Shown here one piece after another: positions 1 through 29,348 of a DNA stretch of 64,000 nt; positions within the stretch are counted from its first letter, which is position 1; each line of letters begins with the position of its first letter. A program made the translations under genes and the position numbers. This DNA is from Macrostomum lignano. Taxonomy: Eukaryota. The notes under the pieces are model-generated. The model was not told the DNA's origin. It made no database searches and saw only the letters and a program-made list of their open reading frames with translations. The stretch is taken from NCBI GenBank assembly GCA_002269645.1, contig NIVC01000100.1, positions 434,001 through 498,000 of the forward strand, written 5' to 3'.

Positions 1-236
1 ATCTGGGAGGCTGGGCTCAGCAATTGAGGATCTGGGAGTCTGGCCCAGCATCTGAGGATCTGGGAGGCTGGGCCCAGCAACTGAGGATCTGGGAGGCTGA
101 CCCAACAACTGAGGATCTGGGAGGCTGGGCCCAGCAAGTGAGGATCTGGGATACTGGCCTAGCAACTGAGGATTTGGGAGGCTGGCCCAGCAATTGAAGA
201 TCTGGAAGGCTGGCCCAGAAACTGAGGATCTGGGAG
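1..236 (-). repeat. 28-bp minisatellite (CTGGGCCAGCCTCCCAGATCCTCAGTTG on minus), runs off the window edge
   Basis: Tandem units read directly; same family as 4470-4963 and 27262-28148. Confidence 0.95.
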
Positions 237-700
237 AAAATGGCAGTGGTTGCGAGGGTTCTAAGAAGATTGCAAAATAATTGAAGCAAGCATTTAAGAC
301 TTGCGCCGTGTTACACGCAATAACGTTTATCACACACAGAGAACACGAAGGATTTCAGCTGATTAACAGGAGGAAAATATCGTTAATCCAACGTAGTGGT
401 TGATGTATTTGAATTGTGTTGCAAATATAGGCTAGTATAATATAACAAAAACTAAATGGCTACGAGTAAATAGAAATTACACAACACAAAACGTGCATTT
501 ATCTGGCAATATTTTACGTTAAGATCTATCTTGGATTAATGATGTTGTTAATCAAAAGGGGGCTGGGAGTTTGGTACTAATTTGAAAAGGCTATCAATAA
601 TATTTATAGGAGATTTGATTAAGTTTTAGTTTAAAAAACGCTACAGAAGTATTGCATCTCAAACGTTTAAAAACTGTAACAAAACCAACAATATTGTCTG

Positions 701-1104
701 GACGGGGCCATCACAAACCCGAAAAATCACAACTCCGAAAAGCGCTTTTCATCATAAACCCGAAATATCATAAACCCGAAATATCACAAACCCGAAATAT
801 CATAACTCCGAAATTGATAGCAACACATATCATAAACCCGAAAAATCATAACTTCGAAAGTTCTAGCAATGTCCAAGACTATTTTGGTTTTCGGAGTTAT
901 GATATTTCGGGTTTTTGATATTTCGGGTTTATGATGTGCGTTGCTAACACTTTTGAAGTTATGATATTTCGGGTTTATGATGGGCAATGCTATTTTGGTT
1001 TTTGGAGTTTGGGTTTATGATATTTCGGAGTTGTGATTTTTCGGGTTTATGATGGGAAGTGCTTTCGGAGTTGTGATTTTTCGGGTTTGTGATGACGACC
1101 CGTC
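701..1104. mobile_element. MITE-like foldback element with internal AAACCCGAAATATCAT repeats
   Basis: Left end GACGGGGCCATCACAAACCCGAAAAATCACAACTCCGAAA is the near reverse complement of the right end TTTCGGAGTTGTGATTTTTCGGGTTTGTGATGACGACCCGTC. Imperfect direct repeat GTCT(G/T)GACGG overlaps both ends. Superfamily not assignable. Confidence 0.7.
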
Positions 1105-1258
1105 TTGACGGCTATTAAAAATCTTTTAAAGTGGCTGAGTTTAACGTGCAAGCTTACTCTAAAACAGAATTGTACACTAGAAAAAGCAAGAGGCATATTG
1201 TGACGCAAGTCAGTAACTAAAAAAACACAGATCCCTGATCCCTGAACTCCTGAACTGC

Positions 1259-2986
1259 TCAAAGTTTGCTGCTAACAGTTCCAGATTCTGCAGCCTCGTT
1301 CCCGCTTAAAAGCAGCAAGCGAAACTGGGCACACAAAGGCAGATGATCGGACGACTGCAGTCGATTAGGTATGCCCCCAATCTGATTCAACTGACGAGGC
1401 GTTAACAGATTCAGTTGGGCCAAGCACTGCAGCAAAGGTACTGGAGTCGGTTTCAATTCTGTCTGCTCTGCCGTTTTGTTGCTAACCGAAGTTCGACCCG
1501 AACTATAAAAGATTGCGTCCACTGTACAACTGTCTTGAGCAGTGTAGGACGTTATAGTAAACAGATTGTTGGAGTCGCGATAGTCGTAAGCCGATTGGAA
1601 ACTCAATTGATGAGAGAGCACTAATTCGGTAGGAGGTGCTTTTTCCTGCTTCTTTCTCTGGGCAGAAATTGATTCTGAATCGGCCTCTTTAAACTGGCAT
1701 TCGAACGTGAATCCAGCCCGTTTAATAAGTTCGGGATTGAGATAGGCCTGCGATCGCCGTCTGAGAAAGCTGGTAGCATTCTGCATAGAAATATCGGACA
1801 CTAGCAGTTTGTCCAGACTGAGACTGCCCTCCAGGAACAGATGGAACAGAGCGGAATTCGGTTGCGAATTCAAGTCGCCGCACAGAATCACCGGAGTCTC
1901 GGGTGCAACAGTGCTAGCAAGTGTGGCAAGCAGATTAGCCGATTGTAACAGTTTGGCATCGCCCCGATTCGGATTAAACAACAGGTGAGTGTTGGCGATA
2001 GCGATTTGGCTAGATGGATTCGATAGAAAGCTGAGAACGGCCACCTGAGCCACATTGTGATAAGCCATTGCTGGCAGATCCTCCCTATAAAACTCTACAG
2101 GCGTGTACTTATCCAATCGAAACACATCGCGACGCCAGAAAATAGCGCAACCGTCTAAAGCTTTGCCAGTCTTGGCCAAATAGCAGCCCTCAAAGCCGAG
2201 CGAGCTGAGCTCACGCTCGAAATAATTGGCATAGGCGTCTGGCTCCACCTCCTGCAAGCAGAGGACATCGGCGCGCAAGCAGCGAATATCGGATAACAGA
2301 TTCAATCGCCTCAGAGGCCAATTTAACCAGCGCGGATTGCGCACGTGACTGTACAAGTGCGGATTAAATTCCAGATGACATTGGGCAAGAATGTTATAAG
2401 ATAGTACGCGAAAATCCACGTGCCTAGAATTTTCCGGTTGAAGCGGCGAACTATTCGGATCTGCAAATTGTTTCCATCGTCGAAGGCTTGGCGAAGCTGA
2501 ATTACACGATGATGAGTAGTTTCTCTGGTGTCTATAGTTCGGTCCGGCACCGCCCATTCCCTGCTGATTGTAGGGCCTGTACCGAAATATACTGCCTCCG
2601 CGGCCACTACTGCGATGCTGACTCTGATACTGATGATGCTGATACTGCATAAGAGATCCATAAGACAACGCTTGCAAGTCCTGTTGAAAATATTCTAAGC
2701 CTTGATGAGGATGATGATGACCTGCTACCTGAAAGTATGAATAATTACTAGTTTGATAGCCGCCACTATCACTACTGGTAGTAGCATTCTGAGATGAATT
2801 CCAATTTTGATAGGACCGACGAAAAATCGAGCTTCTGCGATCGGGTGGCCTGCTTTGATTTCCTTGCATATCCGTTGAGTAGTAGCTGGATTCCGATCCC
2901 GCTGTTGTTATTGCTGCTTTCAATTTCTGGCACCAAAGGGGCCGAATTCTACTGCTAATGCGGTGTAGGGAACGAAAAACTGGCAT
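1259..2986 (-). CDS. ANGEL: Angel-family (CCR4/EEP) phosphoesterase, 575 aa, intronless, basic N-terminal presequence-like segment
   Basis: EEP motifs SYNILAQ, LCLQEVE, CGDLNS and SDHLPL, plus Angel-type IANTHLLFNPNRGDAKLLQ. Confidence 0.92.
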   Translation of the reverse strand: MPVFRSLHRISSRIRPLWCQKLKAAITTAGSESSYYSTDMQGNQSRPPDRRSSIFRRSYQNWNSSQNATTSSDSGGYQTSNYSYFQVAGHHHPHQGLEYFQQDLQALSYGSLMQYQHHQYQSQHRSSGRGGSIFRYRPYNQQGMGGAGPNYRHQRNYSSSCNSASPSLRRWKQFADPNSSPLQPENSRHVDFRVLSYNILAQCHLEFNPHLYSHVRNPRWLNWPLRRLNLLSDIRCLRADVLCLQEVEPDAYANYFERELSSLGFEGCYLAKTGKALDGCAIFWRRDVFRLDKYTPVEFYREDLPAMAYHNVAQVAVLSFLSNPSSQIAIANTHLLFNPNRGDAKLLQSANLLATLASTVAPETPVILCGDLNSQPNSALFHLFLEGSLSLDKLLVSDISMQNATSFLRRRSQAYLNPELIKRAGFTFECQFKEADSESISAQRKKQEKAPPTELVLSHQLSFQSAYDYRDSNNLFTITSYTAQDSCTVDAIFYSSGRTSVSNKTAEQTELKPTPVPLLQCLAQLNLLTPRQLNQIGGIPNRLQSSDHLPLCAQFRLLLLSGNEAAESGTVSSKL

Positions 2987-3627
2987 GAAAAAATAATTTC
3001 AATTTAAGCAATAATTAGGCAATATTTTGGCGATGATTGAATACAATTAATGGAAGTTTTTCATAGACTGAACTATTAGATGCTGTCACCTTAATCTTTA
3101 ATCTAACGTCATAGTTTAAGCATGAACAACTGTAGAAGAACGAAGCCTATACATTTGATCTCTACATTTTTACTAGGATTTTATGCTTGTGCGTTCAAGC
3201 ATTCCAATGTTTGACACGCAAGAAAGTGATGAATTTGAAGGTGGGACCTTTTGTCTTTTTTAAAGAACCGACGCCTAGCACCTGATGCTGTACCCTCGAT
3301 CTTTCGGAATGCTTCTTCCTAAATTAGTACTTTCCTACCACGCATCTGGCCTCCCAGTTAGGTAAATTATCATTCGCCAAAGACTTGACAGCACAAGGCA
3401 GGTTGAGAACCTTGAAGAAATTTTGAGAAATCTCTTAAATTAGCGAAACTTGAAGCCAAGGTTGATTACTCAATCGATAGATCACCTAGCAGAGCAAATA
3501 TCCTTCGTTCCCGTAAATAAAATAAATGAGAGTGGGAAGAATAAAAAATATTGATGAAACAAAGAATTCATAAATCGTGGCCTAAATAGCTAAGCAATAT
3601 GACTAAGCACATTTTGTTAATTGTAAT

Positions 3628-3897
3628 AATAATAGTAATAATAATTGATTACACCTGCTCCAATTGGGCCAGATGTGCAGCCGACAACTGAAAGCTGCCG
3701 ACATGTGGGTCACACCACACATCCTCAATTATCCCAGCTAATGCTGGCACCCATTTTACAGCTCTGGGTGAACTGAAGCAATGCAGAGTTTAGGGCCTTG
3801 CTCAAGGACACAAATTGTTCCAGTGGGATCGGAAATCGAACCCCCGACCTTCAAGTCGTGAGTACGACGCTCTGACCGCTAGGCTACAACACCCCTT
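3628..3897 (-). mobile_element. tRNA-derived CORE-type SINE, copy 1
   Basis: Minus strand shows A-box TAGCCTAGCGG, B-box GGTTCGATTTCC, CORE-like TGTGTCCTTGAGCAAG...CTGTAAAATGGG and an (ATT)n tail. Flanked by the 11-bp direct repeat TTAATTGTAAT (3617-3627 and 3898-3908). Confidence 0.85.
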
Positions 3898-4368
3898 TTA
3901 ATTGTAATGAAACTACAATTGAGCTACGCTCGTATCCAAAAGAAAAAGAAAATTAAGTTTAGAACTTAATTAAGAACTTTTGAGCAGAAAAGTAATGAGG
4001 AAAATATCGTAACTGTTTAATATTAAAAAATGAAACTAACAAACTACAAGCTCTCAGCAAGAAAGTTGTAAAAAGCCGATATATTTCACATTCCACTACA
4101 TGCACAATTTCAAAACTAAGTGACTATTTATAAGAAACATTAAACAACTAACATAAATAGCACGCATGTTAATTCAGTTCATTTTTCGCTAATTATCGCC
4201 TTTATTTTGATTCCGGGCTGCTTCAAGTCGCAGTACTTGAGGCGGCAGTAGTGACAAACCAATCCAGGACGTGATTGCATGAGCCTCTGTAATTTGTGTA
4301 GGTTTCCAAATGAGTGATTATGCATTGCTGCCAATTAATGATCACAAAGTGTACTTGAAGCAGCTAAC

Positions 4369-5214
4369 TCAATAAGACTTACTAGAGACGATTGTAGGAT
4401 ATTTTTCGTACGCGTCCAGTTGGAACTCTGAAATTTAGGCAGAAAAAGTATTTTCAAATTAAAAGTGAATTCTGGAAGGCTGGTCCAGAAACTGAGGATC
4501 TGGGAGGCTGGCCCAGCAACTGAGGATTTGGGAGGCTGGCCCAGAAACTGAGGATCTGGGAGGCTGGCCCAGCAACTGAGGATCTGGAAGGCTGGTCCAG
4601 AAACTGAGGATCTGGGAGGCTGGCCCAGCAACTGAGGATTTGGGAGGCTGGCCCAGAAACTGAGGATCTGGGAGGCTGGCCCAGCAACTGAGGATCTGGG
4701 AGGCTGGCCCAGCAACTGAGGATGTGGGAGGCTGGCCCAGCAACTGAGAATGTGGGAGGCTGGCCCAGCAACTGAGGATCTGGGAGGCTGGCCCAGAAAC
4801 TGAGGATCTGGGAGGCTGGTGGCACAGCAACTGAGGATCTGGGAGGCTGGCCCAGAAACTGAGGATCTGGGAGGCTGGCCCAGAAACTGAGGATCTGGGA
4901 GGCTGGCCCAGCAATTGAGGATCTGGGAGGCTGGCCCAGCAACTAAGGACCTGGGAGGCTGGCAAGTGGCTCCTTAACTGAAAAAGGAAGAATTAAAAAT
5001 AAATCAAAGCAGAAATTTCCATTTTTTAACAGACTCACTCACCTGAACTAGTCTTCATTCTGACCAATGTGATCAGACCCATAAGAACAATTGGAGTAGG
5101 AATAGTTACAATCAGAGCGTGTTTAAATGAAATGAAAGTTTTAGTAGCAGGCCGACCAGAGGCTACGTGCGCCTTCCGAGTTGCCTTAGTGAATCTTTGC
5201 ACCGTTGTGAACAT
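4369..5214 (-). CDS. Putative 76-aa single-pass mitochondrial-type microprotein; complement(join(4369..4427,5043..5214))
   Basis: ATG at 5214, donor CAG|GTGAGT at 5043/5042 and acceptor TTTCAG at 4428 join in phase 1. Product: MFTTVQRFTKATRKAHVASGRPATKTFISFKHALIVTIPTPIVLMGLITLVRMKTSSEFQLDAYEKYPTIVSSKSY. AATAAA about 160 nt after the stop. Confidence 0.7.
4470..4963 (-). repeat. 28-bp minisatellite filling the microprotein intron
   Basis: Tandem CAACTGAGGATCTGGGAGGCTGGCCCAG units on plus. Confidence 0.95.
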
Positions 5215-5496
5215 GCTGCAGTGCTGAAATGTTTGAAAAATATCAACTAAACATCCAGGTTTGCTAAGAATTAGACTAATTTCAGGCTAAGTACATTTTT
5301 AAACAATAAATAACAAACTAACAGATAAGAGTGCAAAATTTTTAATACACAGGCCACTGTGAAAATGCGTATAATGATATAATTAAGTTTAATTGACTGT
5401 ACGAGCACGTTATTAACATATTTAATGCGAGTCGAGGAAAAAACACTTCGGATGATATTGGTTGGGAGGGGGGAGGGTGCTAATGGTGGCTGGTCA

Positions 5497-5970
5497 ATGG
5501 GGCGCCAGGTTGCTTTGAAAGGCGCTATGATGATTTGGAAGTCGCCATAGAGATTTGGAAGGCGCCATAGGGAGTTGGAAGGCGCCATGAGGATTTGGAA
5601 GGCGCTATAGAGATTTGTAAGGCGCCATGAGGATTTGGAAGGCGCCATAGGGAGTTGGAAGGCGCCATGAGGAGTTGGAAGGCGCCATAGAGATTTGGAA
5701 GGCACCGCATGGATTTGGAAGGCGCCATAGGGATTTGATAGGCGCCGCATGGATTTGGAAGGCGCCATGAGGATTTGAAAAGCGCCATAGAGATTTGGAA
5801 GGCGCCGCATGGATTTGAAAGGCGCCATAGGGATTTGATAGGCGCCGCATGGATTTGAAAGGCGCTATAGGGATTTGATGGGCGCTATAGGGATTGGAGA
5901 GGCGCCATGAGGAACTGAAACGCGCCATAGGGATTTGAGACTCGCCACAGGGATTCGGAAGGCGCCGAAT
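5497..5970. repeat. 20-bp minisatellite (GGATTTGGAAGGCGCCATAG)
   Basis: Tandem units read directly; lies between CDC26 and the microprotein gene. Confidence 0.93.
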
Positions 5971-6189
5971 CGATTTTAGAAACACACAGAGATATTTATG
6001 CACATGTAGATAACGTAAGCATTGACATTGGCTGAAGCATCAAATTACATGATGTAATTAAAATTAAGCCGGAAAACTAATTCAAACACAACTTCCTCGA
6101 AATGCTACTATCAATAGCAGAAAATGAAAATCAAACAAATAACGAAGACGAAGAATAATAACATCATGTGTTAATCGAAATTAAAGCCT

Positions 6190-6423
6190 CTAAGAATCAT
6201 TTTGAGTAGCTGGCATAGGATTATAACCAATCCGCTCATTCCTAATAGCCTTCTCGCGTTCCAGATCGGACACTACAGGCTCTGCTTTAATGTCTGAAGT
6301 CGATGATGACGAAGCAGCGGCAGCAGCAGCCGCAGCCCTAGCTTTAGCAACTGTTCGAGCTTGCTCAAGCTCAGATAGATCGTCCATTTTCAATTCAATT
6401 CGACTGATTGGTCGGCGAAGCAT
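6190..6423 (-). CDS. CDC26: Anaphase-promoting complex subunit CDC26 (APC12), 77 aa
   Basis: N-terminus MLRRPISRIELKMDDLSELE matches the CDC26 signature MLRRxPTRLELKLDDIEEF; C-terminal IRNERIGY matches INDRIGY. Confidence 0.9.
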   Translation of the reverse strand: MLRRPISRIELKMDDLSELEQARTVAKARAAAAAAAASSSSTSDIKAEPVVSDLEREKAIRNERIGYNPMPATQNDS

Positions 6424-6633
6424 GATTTAATTAGTCAAATAATTACCGAGCTATCAGGAATATTTAGTTGAGTATGTGTTAATTAACTGACGAAATGTCT
6501 ATGGCCAAAAGACCATAGATCCAGTGCTGCAGTCAGCGGCCACACCGGCCAAGACTGTCTATGGTAAATCCTCACTCATCGCTGTACCATACGATCCAAC
6601 TATAATACGTTTAAATGCATTTGAAAGATACTA

Positions 6634-7345
6634 ATTGATGGGAATTCCACTGAGGCTGAGAGGGATTCCTCCGATGGGAATTCCACTGAGGCTGATGAGG
6701 ATTCCATCGATGAGAATTCTACCGAGGCTGAGAGGGATTCCTCCGATGGGAATTCCACTGAGACTGAGGGGGGATTCCATCGATGAGAATTCCACCGAGG
6801 CTGAGGGGGGTTCCTTCAATGGGAATTCCACTGAGGCTGGGGTTCCTCCGATGGGAATTCCACTGAGGCTGAGGGGGGTTCCTTCAATGGGAATTCCACT
6901 GAGGCTGGGGTTCCTCCGATGGGAATTCCACCGAGGCTGAGGGGGGTTCCTTCAATGGGAATTCCACTGAGGCTGGGGTTCCTCCGATGGGAATTCCACT
7001 GAGGCTGATGAGGATTCCATCGATGAGAATTCTACCGAGGCTGAGAGGGATTCCTCCGATGGGAATTCCACTGAGACTGAGGGGGGATTCCATCGATGAG
7101 AATTCCACCGAGGCTGAGGGGGGTTCCTTCAATGGGAATTCCACTGAGGCTGGGGTTCCTCCGATGGGAATTCCACTGAGGCTGAGGGGGGTTCCTTCAA
7201 TGGGAATTCCACTGAGGCTGGGGTTCCTCCGATGGGAATTCCACCGAGGCTGAGGGGGGTTCCTTCAATGGGAATTCCACTGAGGCTGGGGTTCCTCCGA
7301 TGGGAATTCCACTGAGGCTGAGGGGGATTCCTCCGATAGGAATTC
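6634..7345. repeat. About 33-39-bp minisatellite with GGGAATTCC core
   Basis: Tandem GATGGGAATTCCACTGAGGCTGAGGGGG-type units. Confidence 0.92.
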
Positions 7346-8304
7346 CAAAGATTTTAATTTTTAGGATTTCAAACTAATATATCGTACCGTAAATTTACAC
7401 AAAAACCCTAAAAGTATGATACTACTCAAACACTAGCTAAAATAATATAAACAGAAGACAAAAATCGTTTCTACAAGAATAATGATTTTTTATTTAATCA
7501 TTTCTGCAACCATACGCTATTAATGGCTTTTAAAAGCATCAATTTGCGGTACATAAACAATTTATGAAATTTATCAGCTCTTTATGTATAAAAAATATTG
7601 AAAGCTTTTTACTGGTTAACACGTTATCGAATGCAATCATTTTTATTCAAAAGAGCAGAGCACAATTCTAGCAGTAGGCCAAAAGACTATGATAAGTAAT
7701 ATGAAAGCTTTTGGTTTTTATAATTTATGTGACAGTAATAAATAACAAACAGAAATTTGAATTAATCAGAATAATGCATGGACGCAAAAGCCAAACAACA
7801 CGACAAGAAAAATCATAAAAAACGATTCTCTGTTTCTGGTCCAAGTCAGACAGTACAAAATTATGTAAAAAAACAATACAGTGATAAGCGCAAGTTGACC
7901 TCAAACTTTCATAGCACAGTAAGGCATACGGGTGGTTTTTTACTTTCAGGTGAATGGTGAAATGAAACACTATTGATAAGCACATTTTATGTTGACTGTT
8001 TCGGATTTTTCATACTTTCTTATCAAAAAAAGCTCTTCAGAGACGCATAGCAAACTAACAAAATTCCATAATTAATTCATACTAACTAGGATTTTCTTCC
8101 AATTAACTGAGATTCTCAAGCACATATATTAAATCAAACTTCTGGAGGTTCTTGAAATCATTCTTAAGATCATACTTGGTATTTTTAACCAAGTGATAAA
8201 AAAGATGAAATGCCAAAATCAAATCATTGAATGACTGAAATCCGATACTGCCCCCCAAGGGGGCAATCGCGCTAGTCCACACAACTAAATTTCTCCAGCT
8301 AAGT

Positions 8305-11300
8305 TCAGCACAAACACAGATCTTCGTCGTAGTCCTCCAGATCGTCGCTATTTCGTTGGTTGCCATGAAGACTGAAGCCTGTGTCGCGAGACGCGGAATC
8401 CTCCGCTTTACTATAATTGCGCGACATCATCGGCCGACTATTAACCAGCTTGTGGGCCAGAGTTAAGAATATCGACTCAACGTGATTAGCTTTAGAATCG
8501 TCTTTGGCGCTAGTCTCAAACAATGGCATAGAGTGACTGTCAGCGAATCGTTGAGCAGTTTGAGTTGGCACCGATTGTGCTGGCTCGTCACATTTATTGC
8601 CAATCAATAATCTGGGTATGTCGCCAGTTAAATAATGCTCCTCGCACTCTTGCAACCAGATTGGCAGACTATTAAAAGAGTTTGGCTTAGTCATATCGTA
8701 CACAAATACTACTGCGTGAACATTGCGATAGTAGTGCGGTAGCATGCTGCGGCGGAATCGCTCCTGTCCAGCCGTGTCCCAGAGTTGGAGCTGTGTTGGT
8801 TATTTCAATAGAATGGACAATTTAGTAAAGATCAAAGGTATCAGTTATTTTTACATTTTTATAATAATGTTTAGAGTTAGTTGAGAGCGATTTAAGAGCG
8901 ATGAGATTCAGGTGATCAGCTTTGGCATTCAGAGTGTAGCCAGGATTTTCTATATTTAGGGCGCCAGTACCAAGCGGCTTTAGGATGCTCTACATCTCTA
9001 AAGGCTTTAAGCACAAAGGGGCGCCAATAACAAGGGCCTTAGATAAAGCAAGGAAAAGCCTGAGTCTAAGCATTGAGGAAGACAATAAGGAAATGACAAC
9101 TTGGACTACTGAAAATTAAACATGACATCGGAATTTGTGGTACTAACATTTTTGCTAAAACAATATTGCATAACATAGTCTTAGCTATGAAAACTTGGAA
9201 AATTATCCTTCTTTTTATTAAAGCAAAAATGGATTTTTTGCATATTTTTGTGTTCTAATGCAAAAAGTACAAGGGTTGTCCCAGAAATATTGGGAAAAAC
9301 TGGTACAGAGGCTGACTGTGATATTCAAATTTGATGCAACTTTTGTCATAAGTAGAAAAAATCCAACGGTTGTTTTGGTTTTTAAATGGGCCAAAAATGT
9401 CAATTCTTTCAAAAGTTAGGCCTATAAATAGAACAAGGGGTTAGGGGTAGAGTTACAACCAAGTCCAGCCTACTATGCTGGCCATAGACTAAACTTTTGA
9501 TGTTTAGTCAGAACCATTGATTCGAAAACAAAAGCAAAGGAAGAAGCTGAAGAGAAACAAAAGAGCACATAAGCTCTCAAAAAAAGCAGAAGCTAATCTG
9601 AAGCAGAAGTGGAAGCAGAACAGCTGCAGGCTGCAGGCTGAGGGGTGACTTTGTTGAAAAATCATCAGTCAAGTGTGATGGCGATGCTGCGTGACCAACT
9701 TTGCAGACCCCTCAACTTGGTGTAACTCTACACCCCCACCCATTGTTCTATTTATAGGCACAACTTTTGAAAGAATTGACATTTTTACCCTATTTAAAAA
9801 GCAAAACAACCATTGGATTTTTTCTATTTATGATGAAAGTTGCATAAAATTCGAATATCATAGTCAGCCTCTATTTTGGTTTTTCCCACTGTTTCTAGGA
9901 CAACCCTTGTAGCATGTAACATAATACAACATAATATTATATGAAAAGAAATGGTGAAAGACTATTATATCAATAATGATTAAAAAAATTAAATATTTTA
10001 AATCCAACCTTAAAAACCTTTTATTCATATAAACACTATAACTTTATAAGTTAGTATTTACAAATTACAATATTATTTCTAGGCATGCAACTTGTTGTGA
10101 CCAAAAATGCAACTTATAAAAAGCTTAAGCAAAAATAATATAATTCTGTGTAAATAATAGGAAAACTATGACTATATTATATTAAGGCTAAATTCCAAGT
10201 TAACTAATTAGTAGTACAATGTTTATATTTGTTTGGGTGGGCATCTTTGTGACTTCCTTGGCTGACCCTCTAACTAGCCAGCCAGATTGTCTAGTCAATA
10301 TTGTTAAAACAAGCTTGGCCAGATGTTATGCATATATTGTCACTTAATTTCAATAAATTTGCTGGATCTAGACTAGAAACTCAGCCTTTTAAACTTTATT
10401 GGTATAATGCATATACAACACCTAGCAAACCTGGCCAAACTGGCTTAGTAAAAAAAGCTACTTCCCTAAAAATTGACCCTAAAAATGAAAACTTAAAAAG
10501 GATAATCAAGGAGCCAAAGAACCAAAAAATTCAAAATAAAAAAGAAAAATGAGGAAAAGACAAAGATGAAAGAAACAAAATAAATAACAATAGCTCAAGA
10601 CAAAGGGTTAAAAGGGGTAAGTAATCTAAGTAATAGCTATTACTTAAATTAAATTGCTAAAACAAACCAACCATAAACAAATGCATAATAAATGCTTAGC
10701 TAATTATATCAAGATAAAATGTTACACAAGAGATTGTGAGACAGGAACATATTATTTTAAATTCTAAAATCTTACTTATGACTCCATAACACTTCTATTT
10801 TTGGATTTTTTAATGTAGTGTAAAAGTCTACATATTAATTTTGCAAATATTTGTCTTTTTATTTGTCTTTGATTTCTTTCTTAATCTTTTGTAATCTTTT
10901 TAATCTTTCTTAATTCTTTCTTAATCTTTTGTACCTTTTTGCTATACCTGCTAATGATATTGAAACAACCTTCCTATTTGTATTTTATTATGAGCTAATT
11001 AACTTTCATGTTTCAGAAAAATAAGTTGATAAAAAAATTGATAATTACAAATGTAAGCCAAAAAAATTAGTGCACACCTATTCTTAAAAATCTGCTAGTG
11101 TTGCAACAAAAATGACCTTTTATATTGTGAAATAGACCTTTTTTGACAAACAAATTGGTTTATTTTTTTCTGTTTTTGGCATTAATATTTATAGTAGAAA
11201 ATTGATACATATAAAGATTTGTTTAAATGCTTTACTATAAGCTTAAAATCTTGGAAAGAGGGAAATTTCTATTAAGAAATAAACTTTTTTGATTTTTTTT

Positions 11301-14136
11301 CTACTTAACAGTAACTCTTCTGTGATTTTATGAAGTGCATACCAGGAATATTTTTAAGAGTGATGCATGCCAACTGTGCATGCCTATTTTGATGTACAAG
11401 GCCAATGTACACCTAAATTTTTGGGAATATACTATATAATCTAGAGTGTGGCTCTAGTCCTATCTTAGTCCTACTTTTAATAAAACTTAAATCCTACCTA
11501 CTATCTTAGCAATCTCTATATGCCAAGAGGGCACACTAGGCCTCTTTATACTAAGTTAATATCCCAATGATATACTCTAGGTCCCTATATATGCTAGAAT
11601 TTTCTTGCATACATATATACCATTTAGATTAGAATCTAGTATGATCTAGACAATAGATTAGTAGTAGTATTATTAATTGTGTGAAAATAATTTAAACCTA
11701 TTCAAAAGCAAGAAAAATAGCTAATTATATACAAAGCAGAAAAATGCTTCAATTTTGGAGCCACCAAAAGAGCTTAACAAGTTATTTGGTACCATAGAAA
11801 TAGAAAGCAACCATTACATTATAGTCAAAGTTATCTTTATATATTTAAAATAAATAACCTTGTTTGTTTTAACCTTGATGAAGTGACTAGATGCAAAACA
11901 GCTTAAAAATAATATAATGAAATGAAGTAACTAGTGAAATGAAGTAACAAGGCACTTCTGGCACTTTTAGTACTACTACTAATACTGAATGCTGACTACT
12001 AAATCACATGTCTTGATGTTTTAGCATTAACTACTAATGCTGAAACAAGACACATTCAACACAATAGAAATCCTTGTTTAACAACTCTTTGCAAGTTTTC
12101 TAACAAGCATAACTAGCAGTACATCAGGACACTACACTTGTGATTTGTAGAGCATTTTTGAAGGCCAATTTATTCATTTTGATATTTATGTACGAAAACA
12201 CAAGTGATGCACTCTAAGAAGGTTTTGAGTTTTAACTCCTTAAAGGCTAATTTTCATTTTCTAATTGCAGCAGAAAGGCACTATAATGAAGTTATTTTTA
12301 AGTCTTGCACATTGGTTCATCTATCAAATTCCAGCCATTTGTTATCCAGTATGTTTTTGTTAACTGTTAATTAGCATTTAAAACGTTCCCAAAATATTAT
12401 TATTGATTCTAAATGAGTTAGCAGTACAAAAGTATACTTACACTACTATAAATATATAGCTGCTATAAAACTACAGCACAATAATATATATAATAGGGCA
12501 ACAAGAGAATGGCCCACACAAACTAAGAGTCGCCTGAAGTATTCTACACTGATCATTTTAACATACCTATTCATGCTTAGGTGCAACCTTAGGATTCATC
12601 CGGCCATTTCTATTGGCAACATACATATGTAAGTTGCTATTGGACAGAACAGTAGTCACCTGACTGCTCTCAGCCAATAGCGAATTACATGCGTGTGTTG
12701 CCAATAGAAATGGCCGGATGTATGTATGTATTGTATGTATCTATTAGACAAAAATTATATTTATGTATACTTCTGAAGATTCAGAATCAATATTTGAAAA
12801 TCAGCTGCCAAATTTTTATGCAAATTGTCCTAATGTATTGTAATATTTGTTTTGTAAAGGTTTTATTTATTCACTCAAATTTTGGATGTGATAATAACAA
12901 AGAACATTTTGTAGCATTTTTATTTGAGGAATAATATCATGTTTAATTCTAGACCAACACATGTTTTTGTTTTTTTCACTAAGATATGTTTAAGCACTTT
13001 CTAATTGGCAGTTCTTAAAAATTAGAAAGGACTGGTAATGGAAGTACTAGAAGATGGAAGTTACTTTTTTTTAAAAGTACTGGTACCAAAACAAGTGCCA
13101 GAAGTTACTTTTTCAAAATAACTTTTTCAACATTGGAAGTAACCAAATATTTATGCTAGATACTGAATTATCAACCAATCAATCTGTGTGAGATTTTAGT
13201 TAGTAAAAACTATTTTTTGTTTATTAGCTATTAAGCTGCAGCAAGCAATAACAAATTGAACAAGTTTTATCAATTGAGATGACAAAATGACTAGGATTAA
13301 TTGACAATAAGATTCTAAAAAATATGTTTGATTGCCATATGAACTCACTTGAAGTTGGAACTAATATGATTGGTGGATGATGAAATGACTCCTTTTAGAT
13401 AGCGCATGTTAAGATGAAGTTACAATAGTCGAGATAAGCACCCTTGATACTTAGACCTAGATGACAAAATGGCAGATGACGAAACATACATGCGCAACAG
13501 TCAGCCAAGTTGGCCGACCAATTTAGCAGCCAAGCAAGGAAGTCGCAAAAATGCCCACCCAAAAATACCAAAATAGTAGTACTAAGTAGCTGATGAGGCA
13601 TTTTGGCTTAGTAAGACGATCATAGTTACTCCTGCCATTTACCCAAAGTTGCATTTATTTCACTTTAGGGTTTTTATACATGTAAGTCGCATTTTGGCCA
13701 AAAACTACATTGCTTTTTTGTTAAAACTAAGTTGCATGGCCAACCGAATTTTTGAGATGGCACATGTATATGACGAAATGACTAGGAACCTTAGGCATAG
13801 CCATAAGCTTATTTAATGATATAAAACTAAACTTAAATATTTTATAATCAATATTTTATTTTTGGTTAGAACAAATAAAAAAAAATTCAAATTTTTTTAA
13901 AAACATACCTTAACATCTTCAGAGCCTATTTTTATAGATCTCTCACGAAAGTCAACACCAATAGTGGCTTCAGTCCTAGAAGGAAACTTTCCTTCACAAA
14001 ATCGATAGGTCAGACAAGTCTTTCCAACATTGGAATCTCCAACAACAATAATTTTGAAAATTCTTTTGGACTTTTTGGCACTAGCTGAAGCAAAAGTTCC
14101 AACATTATTTCCATTTATTTCATTCAGATTGGACAT
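8305..14136 (-). CDS. RAB33: Rab33 small GTPase; complement(join(8305..8790,13909..14136))
   Basis: [40 protein letters not shown] joins in phase 0 (AAG|GTATGT ... CACAG|CTC) to [33 protein letters not shown]-terminal CLC prenylation motif. Confidence 0.95.
9270..9909. mobile_element. Tc1/mariner-like MITE in the Rab33 intron
   Basis: TA|CAAGGGTTGTCC ... GGACAACCCTTG|TA ends; inverted arms of about 190 bp (9270-9465 vs 9715-9909); no transposase ORF. Confidence 0.85.
12597..12720. repeat. 124-bp near-perfect palindrome (short foldback MITE or hairpin RNA)
   Basis: CATCCGGCCATTTCTATTGGCAAC ... GTTGCCAATAGAAATGGCCGGATG, arms of about 57 bp, loop of about 9 nt. Confidence 0.8.
13485..13770. 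mobile_element. hAT-like MITE, copy 1
   Basis: Starts CATACATGCGCAAC; right TIR degenerate; 8-bp TSD TGACGAAA at 13477-13484 and 13771-13778; homologous to 18288-18570. Confidence 0.88.
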
Positions 14137-26720: not shown

Positions 26721-29348
26721 ATGAGCGGCCCAATGTCTTCGCTCAACAAATCGCGTCGAATGCCGTTTAAACCGCCATCGAATCCGAATTTTGGCGGCGC
26801 TAACAATAACATCAATACTACTCATAGCAACAGTAGTAGAAGTAGTAGTAGGCAGTCCAGCGATTTGACAACTGGAACAGGCGGTGGCGGTTCTAAGAGG
26901 TCTTCGCCTCGGCTGCCCCCAATGTCTTCTTTATCCACTATTGACGACAAAAGTCTGGGCTCGCCGAAATCTGCAAAGACTGCGGAAGACGATTCGGAGT
27001 TGCTTAAATTAGCCAACGAAGTTCTTGATGACGAAGTCAGTCGTAGAATGCGACGCGATAGGCAGAAGCGCGAAACTGCGACAGTGAAATCTGCTGATCG
27101 ACCGCCGAGTGCCCGGGGGAACAGCGACGCAGACCTGCTGGCCACTGCCGTCAGCCGGGTCGGAGCTCTTGAACGGCTGTGCAAGGAGCAGCGGGAGGAG
27201 CTGAGCAGGCGGCAGCGAAGGATCGACGTGCTAGAGGATAAGGTCTGTCTTGGTGTGCAGCTGCCCTCCCAGATCTTCAGTTGCTGGACCAGCCTCCCGA
27301 ATACTCAGTTGCTGGGCCATCCTCCCAGATCCTCAGTTGCTGGGCCAGCCTCCCAGATCCTCAGTTGCTGGGCCAGTGTCTCAGATCCTCAGTTGCTGGG
27401 CCATTCTCCCAGATCCTCAGTTGCTGGGCCATTCTCCCAGATCCACAGTTGCTGGGCCAGCCTCCCAGATCCTCAGTTGCTGGGCCATCCAGATCTTCAG
27501 TTGCTGGGCCAGCCTCCCAGATCCTCAGTTGCTGGGCCAGTCTCCCAGATCCTCAGTTGCTGGGCCATTCTCCCAAATCCTCAGTTGCTGAGCCAGCCTC
27601 CCAGATCCTCAGTTGCTGGGCCATCCAGATCTTCAGTTGCTGGGCCAGCCTCCCAGATCCTCAGTTGCTGGGCCAGTGTCTCAGATCCTCAGTTGCTGTG
27701 CCAGCCTCCCAGATCCTCAGTTGCTGGGCCATCCTCCCAAATCCTCAGTTGCTGGGCCAGCTTCCCAGATCTTCAGTTGCTGACTTGCTGGGCCATCCTC
27801 CCAAATCCTCAGTTGCTGGGCCAGCCTCCCAGATCTTCAGTTGCTGGGCCAGCCTCCCAGATCTTCAGTTGCTGGGCCAGCCTCCCAGATCCTCAGTTGC
27901 TGGGCCATTCTCCTAGATCCTCAGTTGCTGGGCCAGCTTCCCAGATCCTCAGTTGCTGGGCCAGCCTCCCAGATCCTCAGTTGCATGGCCAGTCTCCCAG
28001 ATCCTCAGTTGCTGGGCCATTCTCCCAAATCCTCAGTTGTTGAGCCATCCTCCCAGATCCCCAGTTGCTGTGCCAGTCTCCCAGATCCTCAGTTGCATGG
28101 CCAGCCTCCCAGATCCTCAGTTTCTGGGCCAGTCTCCCAGATCCCAGACAGCTGCATGTTTACATAAATCAATAGCAGCATTCGCAGTCACCAGGTTATA
28201 GTCAATAACACCAATCGTGTTGTGCACAATTCACTCAGGTTCGCCTTCTGACCACAGCCGCTGGCGCAGCCAAAGGCAGCTCCAGAGAAGTGGACTCTCT
28301 GCGATCGCGCTGCCGTGAACTGCAAAAGCAAGTCCACGAGATGGAGAATTTCTTAGCCGATTACGGATTAATCTGGGTTGGAGAAGATGACGCAGATGAG
28401 GCTGCCGACTGGAACTGGGATCCCAGCAGTTTCTGGCGTCCCAAAGATTCGACATCAACCGATGCAGCAGCTGATAGCATTGAGGCCACTCCAAACTTTT
28501 TCAATCGTCTATTAGAATGCATCAGGGAATTGAATCGTCTGGTTGGCGAGGACGAACTGCAAGTGACCAAAACTGGCACTGGAGCTAAACTAGCCAGACA
28601 AAAGTTGGAGTCTGCTATACCTTTATCAGTGTACGCCAATGGTCTGGCTCTGTGGGATGGTCCGTTTCGATTATACACCGAGCCGTCCACTAGGCAGCTG
28701 GTTGCGGACATTCTTGACGGCTATTTTCCAACAGAATTGCAGAGTCGCTATCCGGATGGCGTAGCATTTGTGGTTAACGATAGGAGAGAGGTGCAGTTTG
28801 ACTCTACTAGCAGTAATAGTACACTTGGATTCGCTGGTCAAGGCCGAGTGCTGGGCGGTGGTAGCAGAGATGATCAACAACAGCAGCAGAGACGTCAGCA
28901 GTTCTTAGGCCGTCTGCCAGCCTCGGTTGTGGCAAAATCTGGTCAGCTGGTCGATGTCCGGCAGTCAGTAGCTGATACATTAAGCGCCGGTCATGAGCAG
29001 CAACTACCAGCTCGTCAGCTGTCAAACGTGTTGATTGACGCTTCAGGCGACACCCCAGCCGATCGGGTTGCATCTGTAAAGATTCGATGCAATGTCAGAC
29101 AGGCCAATGCTGGTACATATTTAATCAGATTGCCGTTTAATTCGAAAGTGTCTCAGCTATTTAGCTTGTTGAGAGATCGGGGTGCAATGTCCAATTTAAA
29201 CATTGCCAATGGCGAACAAGTTGCTCTGGTGAATGCTTATCCAAGATCTACGCTAAGTGAGGATGGCGAATCAACGGCTACTGTGGAAGAGTGCGGACTG
29301 GCACCTAATGCTACTCTGATGCTAGTTGTGCAGAAGATTAATAAGTAG
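26721..29348 (+). CDS. UBXN11: UBX domain-containing protein 11 (SEP + UBX), about 543 aa; join(26721..27242,28239..29348)
   Basis: LQKQVHEMENFLADYGLIWVG signature; SEP-like LSVYANGLALWDGPFRLY..QLVADILDGYFPTELQSRYPDGV; C-terminal UBX-like ..APNATLML. Phase-0 intron AAG|GTCTGT ... CTCAG|GTT; AATAAA near 29786. Confidence 0.92.
27262..28148 (+). repeat. 28-bp minisatellite filling the UBXN11 intron
   Basis: Same family as 1-236 and 4470-4963, in the opposite genomic orientation. Confidence 0.95.

Follow-up and report, generated by a model that had tools for sequence, protein, structure and literature searches.

A satellite-interrupted gene in Macrostomum lignano that probably encodes a small single-pass membrane protein

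Does a short, spliced reading frame that is interrupted by a satellite array belong to a real gene, and if so, what kind of protein would the gene encode? The frame in question is in the flatworm Macrostomum lignano, near a gene for an Angel protein, and a first-pass annotation had described it as a hidden two-exon gene for a 76-amino-acid microprotein. Our analysis points to a real gene with three exons, which probably encodes a single-pass membrane protein of 104 amino acids, along with an 89-amino-acid isoform that lacks exon 2. As a guess, we would place the protein in the mitochondrial inner membrane.

The window that we analyzed is a stretch of 64,000 nucleotides. It is 100% identical to positions 434001-498000 of GenBank contig NIVC01000100.1 (assembly GCA_002269645.1; locus L003), and adding 434000 to a window coordinate gives the contig position. 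The three-exon gene occupies NIVC01000100.1:438189-439214 on the minus strand. It has already been recorded, and the word "hidden" does not apply: a protein model from the same locus is already in UniProt (A0A1I8HE99, or P0001), and it is 100% identical to the 76-amino-acid reading frame through residue 72. Past residue 72, the model reads KAHAITSWIGLSLLPPQVLRLEAARNQNKGDN, which matches a splice from a donor at 4382 to a third exon. P0001 is 100% identical to exons 1-3 as found in the window, it maps onto canonical GT-AG sites, and it defines a product of 104 amino acids from the methionine (exons 1-2-3). In the order of transcription, the features are:

5215..5231, minus strand: short 5' leader, with TTTCAG at 5229-5224 and CTGCAG at 5221-5216
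5043..5214, minus strand: coding part of exon 1 (172 nt), which begins with the ATG at 5214-5212, ends in phase 1, and is identical to P0001 and P0002
4428..5042, minus strand: intron 1 (615 nt), GTGAGT...TTTCAG, with the donor GTGAGT at 5042
4383..4427, minus strand: exon 2 (45 nt, a multiple of 3), which encodes EFQLDAYEKYPTIVS; a cassette exon, absent from P0002
4287..4382, minus strand: intron 2 (96 nt), GTAAGT...TTACAG, with the second donor at 4382 (exonic cta followed by GTAAGT)
4189..4286, minus strand: coding part of exon 3, which encodes (K)AHAITSWIGLSLLPPQVLRLEAARNQNKGDN and ends with the stop codon TAG at 4191-4189

Exon 1 covers codons 1-57 plus the first base of codon 58, a stretch that includes a basic N-terminus and a transmembrane (TM) segment at residues 33-51. 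There is an A at -3 relative to the ATG. Intron 1 is mostly a 28-bp satellite array (4471-4963, 17.5 copies), and it is closed by the acceptor cctaaatttcAG (tttcAG), so that exon 2 begins at 4427. The same satellite is also at 27250-28147 and at 17-289 of the window, and its copy number varies between copies of the gene. When we used tblastn and blastn to look for further copies of the gene within the window, only this satellite recurred.

The signals that the first-pass annotation had listed are all there, on the minus strand: a consensus donor (GTGAGT at 5042), an acceptor, matching phase, TTTCAG 9 nt before the ATG, and AATAAA at 4206-4201. The AATAAA overlaps the final codons of exon 3, ~10 nt ahead of the stop. 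As for the proposed two-exon structure, its junction between exons 1 and 2 is used by the UniProt model, and the 76-amino-acid product reads as quoted, but the third exon was missed, and the product has 104 amino acids. The two-exon reading is closed by an in-frame TGA at 4371-4369, and its last four codons and the TGA fall inside intron 2. Going by these positions, the 76-amino-acid form would arise only as a product of intron-2 retention.

A second UniProt entry, A0A1I8HMH3 (P0002), is a model for an isoform that skips exon 2. In P0002, exon 1 is joined straight to exon 3, in frame, to give 89 amino acids, and the model carries the substitution Q89H. Both P0001 and P0002 begin 5 codons upstream of the methionine, with the 5' leader translated as FQHCS. 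From these two protein models, we infer that the gene is expressed. In the leader, P0002 has CAG where a paralogous copy of the gene on another contig (L002, described below) has CTG, and P0002 is therefore from yet another copy or assembly.

GenBank's annotation of NIVC01000100.1 includes a Rab-like gene, a 77-amino-acid CDC26, the Angel gene, and a tetraspanin, and it has no gene at the locus of the three-exon membrane protein. In the GenBank submission of the M. lignano genome, transcripts that overlapped repeat annotations were excluded (PMC5730564). With a satellite in intron 1, the gene was probably left out for this reason. The Angel neighbor is a 575-amino-acid open reading frame at 1259-2986, also on the minus strand, and is 100% identical to M. 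lignano PAA63552.1. On the other side, CDC26 ends 960 nt upstream of the gene, and 453 nt of the gap is a tandem repeat. A search of positions 1-12000 of the window with ARAGORN and Rfam turned up nothing relevant.

If the gene is real, where would its product be? The protein has one hydrophobic segment (residues 33-51), which is 19 residues long and has a Kyte-Doolittle mean of 2.31. Residues 1-32 have a net charge of +7, with 7 K/R and 0 D/E, and 12 of the 32 residues are S, T, or A. The first-pass description, in which a single TM segment comes after a basic N-terminus that has no acidic residues, is borne out. By the positive-inside rule, the N-terminus would be on the cytosolic or the matrix side of a membrane, and the C-terminal part of ~50 residues would be on the opposite side. 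The N-terminus has a composition like that of a presequence, which would make the mitochondrial inner membrane the most likely site. The basic N-terminus could be a presequence, or it could be an uncleaved segment that faces the matrix, as in small subunits of the respiratory chain. By eye, it shows no clear R-2 or R-3 cleavage site. Either way, we would expect the protein to be a small accessory, assembly, structural, or regulatory subunit of a membrane complex, and not an enzyme. Given that the gene is real, a mitochondrial location is a guess from composition, and we put its chances at slightly below even.

The same small membrane protein could instead be in the secretory pathway. The TM segment would then be an ER signal anchor, and the product would be a type II protein with a cytosolic N-terminus, which might be a subunit or regulator of a complex in the ER, the Golgi, or the plasma membrane and would have no role in mitochondria. 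Very hydrophobic TM segments favor targeting to the ER by SRP, and the segment at residues 33-51 is very hydrophobic. Again by the positive-inside rule, the basic flank would suit an orientation with the N-terminus in the cytosol, and a basic N-terminus ahead of a very hydrophobic TM segment suits a type II signal anchor of the ER or Golgi just as well as it suits a mitochondrial protein. The N-terminus has no significant amphipathic moment (its maximum hydrophobic moment is 0.51, no higher than in shuffled versions of the N-terminus; P = 0.11). Also, the protein does not match any family from the respiratory chain (see below). On the other hand, an N-terminus of 32 residues with that many basic and S/T/A residues and no acidic ones is typical of presequences, and there are two prolines inside the TM segment. 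Given a real gene, we think that a location in the secretory pathway is unlikely, if still a sizeable chance; as an account of the locus as a whole, the secretory explanation is a shade less likely than that. We continue to prefer the mitochondrial inner membrane. Predicted structures were uninformative: a single-sequence AlphaFold2 model was of low confidence and all helices (pLDDT 56), and when this low-confidence model was compared to the PDB with Foldseek, there was just one match, with an E-value of 4.4, and nothing significant.

To see how the frame evolves, we compared it to paralogous copies of the neighborhood, which we reached via the cluster of Angel proteins. One copy (L001, on NIVC01001833.1) is 99.2% identical to the window, and its coding sequence is identical. 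The other copy (L002, on NIVC01000327.1) is ~91-94% identical to the window across most of the neighborhood, with ~5-7% divergence at the copy of the gene. Our test for selection is based on five substitutions in this one pair of paralogs: between the window and L002, the 312 nt of coding sequence differ by 5 substitutions, without a single indel. Each of the 5 is at the third position of a codon (P = (1/3)^5 = 0.004). The changes at 5188 and 5104 (exon 1), 4414 (exon 2), and 4243 (exon 3) are synonymous. The sole nonsynonymous change is Q89H, at 4237 in exon 3, where L002 encodes the same residue as P0002. By the Nei-Gojobori method (Sd = 4, Nd = 1), pS is 0.051 and pN is 0.0043, for a ratio of 0.084 (P = 0.016, binomial test). 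The first-pass annotation had named a dN/dS near 1, or frameshifts, as the pattern that would count against the gene; the low ratio and the lack of indels favor coding instead, with the caveat that L002 is a paralog and not a copy from a sister species.

Within the gene and around it, 34 of 711 positions (~5%) of unique non-coding sequence differ from L002, with many gap columns (P = 0.013, Fisher exact test). Directly after the TAG, divergence climbs to 8.6%, with indels. Just upstream of the ATG, there are four substitutions, at positions 2, 2, 1, and 3 of the frame, which is not a coding-like pattern. This implies that the coding constraint begins at the ATG at 5214, even though the frame stays open for 24 codons upstream. 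At the four splice sites, the window and L002 do not differ. As a control, we considered the Angel gene, which has pS = 0.070 and a ratio of 0.195 in the same comparison. In another control, the copy of CDC26 in L002 turned out to have a nonsense mutation at codon 21 (CAA>TAA), so the duplicated block tolerates the decay of genes, yet the open reading frame of the membrane protein was kept. At the level of sequence, these comparisons show purifying selection between the paralogous copies on exactly the frame from the ATG at 5214 to the TAG at 4189.

Might the open frame have arisen by chance, in a transcript that is non-coding or spurious, with luck or gene conversion behind its clean pattern between paralogs? 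There are just 5 coding substitutions, and codon usage is not clearly coding-like. (It is intermediate between that of coding sequence and that of stop-free non-coding sequence, with a synonymous-only log-likelihood ratio of 0.4-1.7 vs. 12.6 ± 6.4 for three window genes, which also served as the training set.) The protein has no homologs and no known domain, GenBank has no gene at the locus, and the structural model is of low confidence. However, gene conversion does not explain why every substitution is at the third position of a codon. Furthermore, pS is the same as the local neutral divergence, and the pN/pS ratio is 0.084. Indels are absent from all 315 nt but plentiful in the flanks; the same frame runs through three exons and survives exon skipping; and the pattern is lost directly before the ATG and right after the stop. 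Also, the CDC26 copy decayed and this frame is intact. We consider a non-coding explanation to be quite improbable. Because of the third-position changes, the pN/pS ratio of 0.08, the lack of indels, and the kept splice sites, this is very probably a real and selected coding gene, and we are correspondingly confident, from the pattern of substitutions, that the gene is functional.

A short gene that is interrupted by a satellite, and which GenBank's annotation of this repeat-rich and polyploid flatworm genome left out, can thus still be a selected coding gene. More broadly, where a sister genome is lacking, the paralogs that M. lignano has retained can provide a built-in dN/dS test for orphan microproteins.

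Which family might the protein belong to? With hmmscan, neither the 76-, 104-, 89-, and 109-amino-acid forms nor their sub-segments had any match in Pfam-A (E ≤ 10). An exhaustive phmmer search against 1.84 billion protein representatives found nothing outside of M. lignano except for two repetitive junk proteins; it did return P0002. A word-indexed search for homologs found the species' own models only. To calibrate these searches, we considered the Angel neighbor, whose best match outside of M. lignano is vertebrate ANGEL2, at 37% identity. This implies that the databases that we searched have no close relative among the flatworms, so the absence of homologs cannot be taken to mean that the gene is an orphan and cannot be used to date it. 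Judging from these searches, the family would be either restricted to the lineage or diverged beyond detection by sequence.

The first-pass annotation had likened the protein to COX8 and COX7C. Subunits of the COX8, COX7C, and NDUFC1 type are small proteins of the inner membrane that bear presequences, and they have a basic and acid-free N-terminus, one TM helix, and a short polar tail. The protein described here has the same order of elements, and that part of the comparison stands. The likeness is architectural only, as no Pfam family is matched, and in particular, no Pfam model for COX8, COX7C, or COX6C matches any of the isoforms (E ≤ 10). Pfam also holds models for other small subunits of the respiratory chain and for the ribosomal protein eS7 (Ribosomal_S7e).

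The automatic names in UniProt are "COX6C domain-containing" for P0001 and "MMPL domain-containing" for P0002. Neither name is reproducible with the current Pfam, and we flag both of them as unsupported by current models. Still, the name of P0001 (which is also its name in UniRef) implies that the gene might encode a highly diverged subunit 6C of cytochrome c oxidase from M. lignano. The protein resembles COX6C (PF02937; ~75 amino acids) in its small size and its layout, with one TM helix between a basic N-terminal segment and a polar C-terminal tail. After the TM segment, the peptide D62-A-Y-E-K-Y67, which is encoded by exon 2, loosely recalls D-F-Y-R-N-Y of vertebrates (D-x-Y-x-x-Y). P0002, which lacks exon 2, is not named COX6C, and we infer that the absence of this peptide may account for its different name. 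However, a single TM segment with a basic N-terminal segment is generic and is common to many unrelated small membrane proteins, and the product here has 104 amino acids, with a different and partly hydrophobic C-terminal exon. The Pfam searches included PF02937, which had no match to any isoform or segment, and P0001 has no precomputed Pfam domain. We also built a profile of COX6C, from vertebrate sequences only (the human sequence was verified against chain I of PDB 9i6f). With hhalign against 98 vertebrate COX6C sequences, P = 0.51, and only 11 TM residues were aligned. With hmmsearch (filters off), the score was -0.4 bits, which was equaled by 60% of shuffles that preserve the TM segment. 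In a pairwise comparison to human COX6C, P = 0.42. The post-TM motifs of the vertebrate alignment, KKAYADFYRNYD and FEEMRKAGIFQS, are not found in the C-termini of the 76- or the 104-amino-acid forms. Specifically, both the block K-K-A-Y-A-D-F-Y-R-N-Y-D and the block F-E-E-M-R-K-A-G-I-F-Q-S are lacking, and the latter includes the conserved C-terminal F-E-x-M-R-x-A-G-x-F-Q-S. As hhalign, hmmsearch, and the pairwise comparison all gave noise-level results, we rejected COX6C as a supported assignment, and we think that such an origin is very improbable.

We dismiss as chance, and as exceedingly unlikely, the idea that the gene is a relic or derivative of a fragment of ribosomal protein eS7 (RPS7; residues 95-162): three eS7 chains are the only sequence matches of the 76-amino-acid frame in the PDB, all to the same region, with an alignment that crosses the junction of exons 1 and 2 and a pairwise score of 62 for the Arabidopsis eS7 fragment (22.5 ± 4.1 for shuffles), but their E-values of 0.3-1.5 are what chance would give in the database searched (1.2-1.4 with the full 104-amino-acid protein), human eS7 aligns poorly (P = 0.024) even though a metazoan source should beat a plant, the Pfam model for eS7 is not matched, tblastn with human eS7 found no other eS7 exons in the window, and the charged residues of eS7 are replaced by a TM helix.

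A more ambitious form of the mitochondrial reading is that the gene encodes an inner-membrane microprotein that is restricted to Macrostomum (either de novo or very fast-evolving) and acts as a taxon-specific accessory subunit or assembly factor for OXPHOS. It might be co-transcribed with its upstream neighbor CDC26 and the downstream ANGEL2-like gene, in an operon that is resolved by the spliced leader (SL). We think that this full combination is unlikely. If the gene did turn out to encode a truly lineage-specific mitochondrial subunit, it would be relevant to the turnover of OXPHOS accessory subunits. Otherwise, the finding is a modest one: this is an ordinary, uncharacterized gene for a small membrane protein, and it does not make any long-standing question testable.

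The 5' leader bears on how the transcript might begin. P0001 begins with FQHCS-M, so the model starts at ~5229-5231. The acceptor motif for SL trans-splicing in M. lignano is [T/C]TNCAG (PMC8629364). TTTCAG, which ends 9 nt before the ATG, and CTGCAG, which ends 1 nt before it, both fit this motif and are candidate acceptors. The last three bases of the published M. lignano SL are ATG, which would come into frame with the gene (MHCS-M...) through splicing at TTTCAG and would not through splicing at CTGCAG. By the repeat-adjusted 1-kb criterion of PMC8629364, an operon with CDC26 is conceivable. In the paralog L002, TTTCAG is changed to TTTCTG, and CTGCAG is retained.

The microprotein gene lies within a Rab-like / CDC26 / microprotein / Angel block, and at least three copies of this block are present in GCA_002269645.1 (on NIVC01001833.1, on NIVC01000327.1, and on NIVC01000100.1, which is the contig of the window). 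Two of the copies are ~99.2% identical, while one is mostly ~91-94% identical. The multiple copies fit the redundancy and hidden polyploidy that were reported for the DV1 line of M. lignano (PMC5730564). The features in and around the block, along with other features in the window, are:

Features of the window
1259-2986, minus strand: Angel, an Exo_endo_phos protein of 575 aa, single exon
~3830-3900, minus strand: tRNA-like stretch in the spacer that separates Angel from the microprotein gene; ggggtgttgtagcctagcggtcagagcg...ggtcgggggttcgatttccgatccc, motifs resembling an A-box and a B-box
17-289, 4471-4963 and 27250-28147: 28-bp satellite, consensus TCTGGGAGGCTGGCCCAGCAACTGAGGA; the array at 4471-4963 fills intron 1, and the other arrays are elsewhere in the window
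5514-5966: tandem array of a 20-nt unit, TTTGGAAGGCGCCATGAGGA, ~22 copies, between CDC26 and the microprotein gene
6190-6423, minus strand: CDC26 (APC/C subunit), single exon, 77 aa, MLRRPISRIELKMDDLSELEQ..., annotated in GenBank
8305-8745, minus strand: last exon of a Rab/Ras-family GTPase (PF00071, E = 3e-19), with a CLC prenylation motif at its end
28290-29348, plus strand: SEP-domain ORF (PF08059, E = 7e-15)

The CDC26 protein matches PF10471 with 29.8 bits (above the cut-off of 24.5), and the microprotein gene is 960 nt downstream on the same strand. In the paralogous copy on NIVC01000327.1, CDC26 has a nonsense change at codon 21 (CAA to TAA) and a 3-nt insertion, which make that copy a pseudogene. 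For Angel, pN/pS between the window and this paralog is 0.195. Outside of M. lignano, the nearest relatives of the Angel protein are vertebrate ANGEL2 (~37% identity), and its basic N-terminus, which was noted in the first-pass annotation, is borne out (MPVFRSLHRISSRIRPLW...).

UniProt A0A1I8HMH3, a model of the microprotein without exon 2, shares Q89H with the NIVC01000327.1 copy. However, the model's translated leader is FQHCS (CAG), while the same codon in NIVC01000327.1 is CTG (7254-7285 compared). Judging from this codon, the model's source must be another copy, another allele, or an older assembly.

The tRNA-like stretch may be a tRNA-derived SINE; it was not called by ARAGORN, nor by Rfam at E ≤ 0.01. 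Downstream of Angel, a weak Rfam match to mir-3145 (830-934, plus strand; E = 0.003; 32.4 bits, gathering score 98) is almost certainly due to chance.

Compared with the window, the intron 1 array lacks two satellite units (56 nt) in NIVC01001833.1, and its length in NIVC01000327.1 is very unlike the window's. The 20-nt array has higher-order periods of 40, 60, and 100. Both repeats give rise to spurious ORFs: long ones in the window's ORF listing from the satellite, and 5271-5828 and 5605-6003 from the 20-nt array. Many further long ORFs in the window lie within repeats and have no Pfam match. The SEP-domain ORF and the GTPase exon are real coding pieces.
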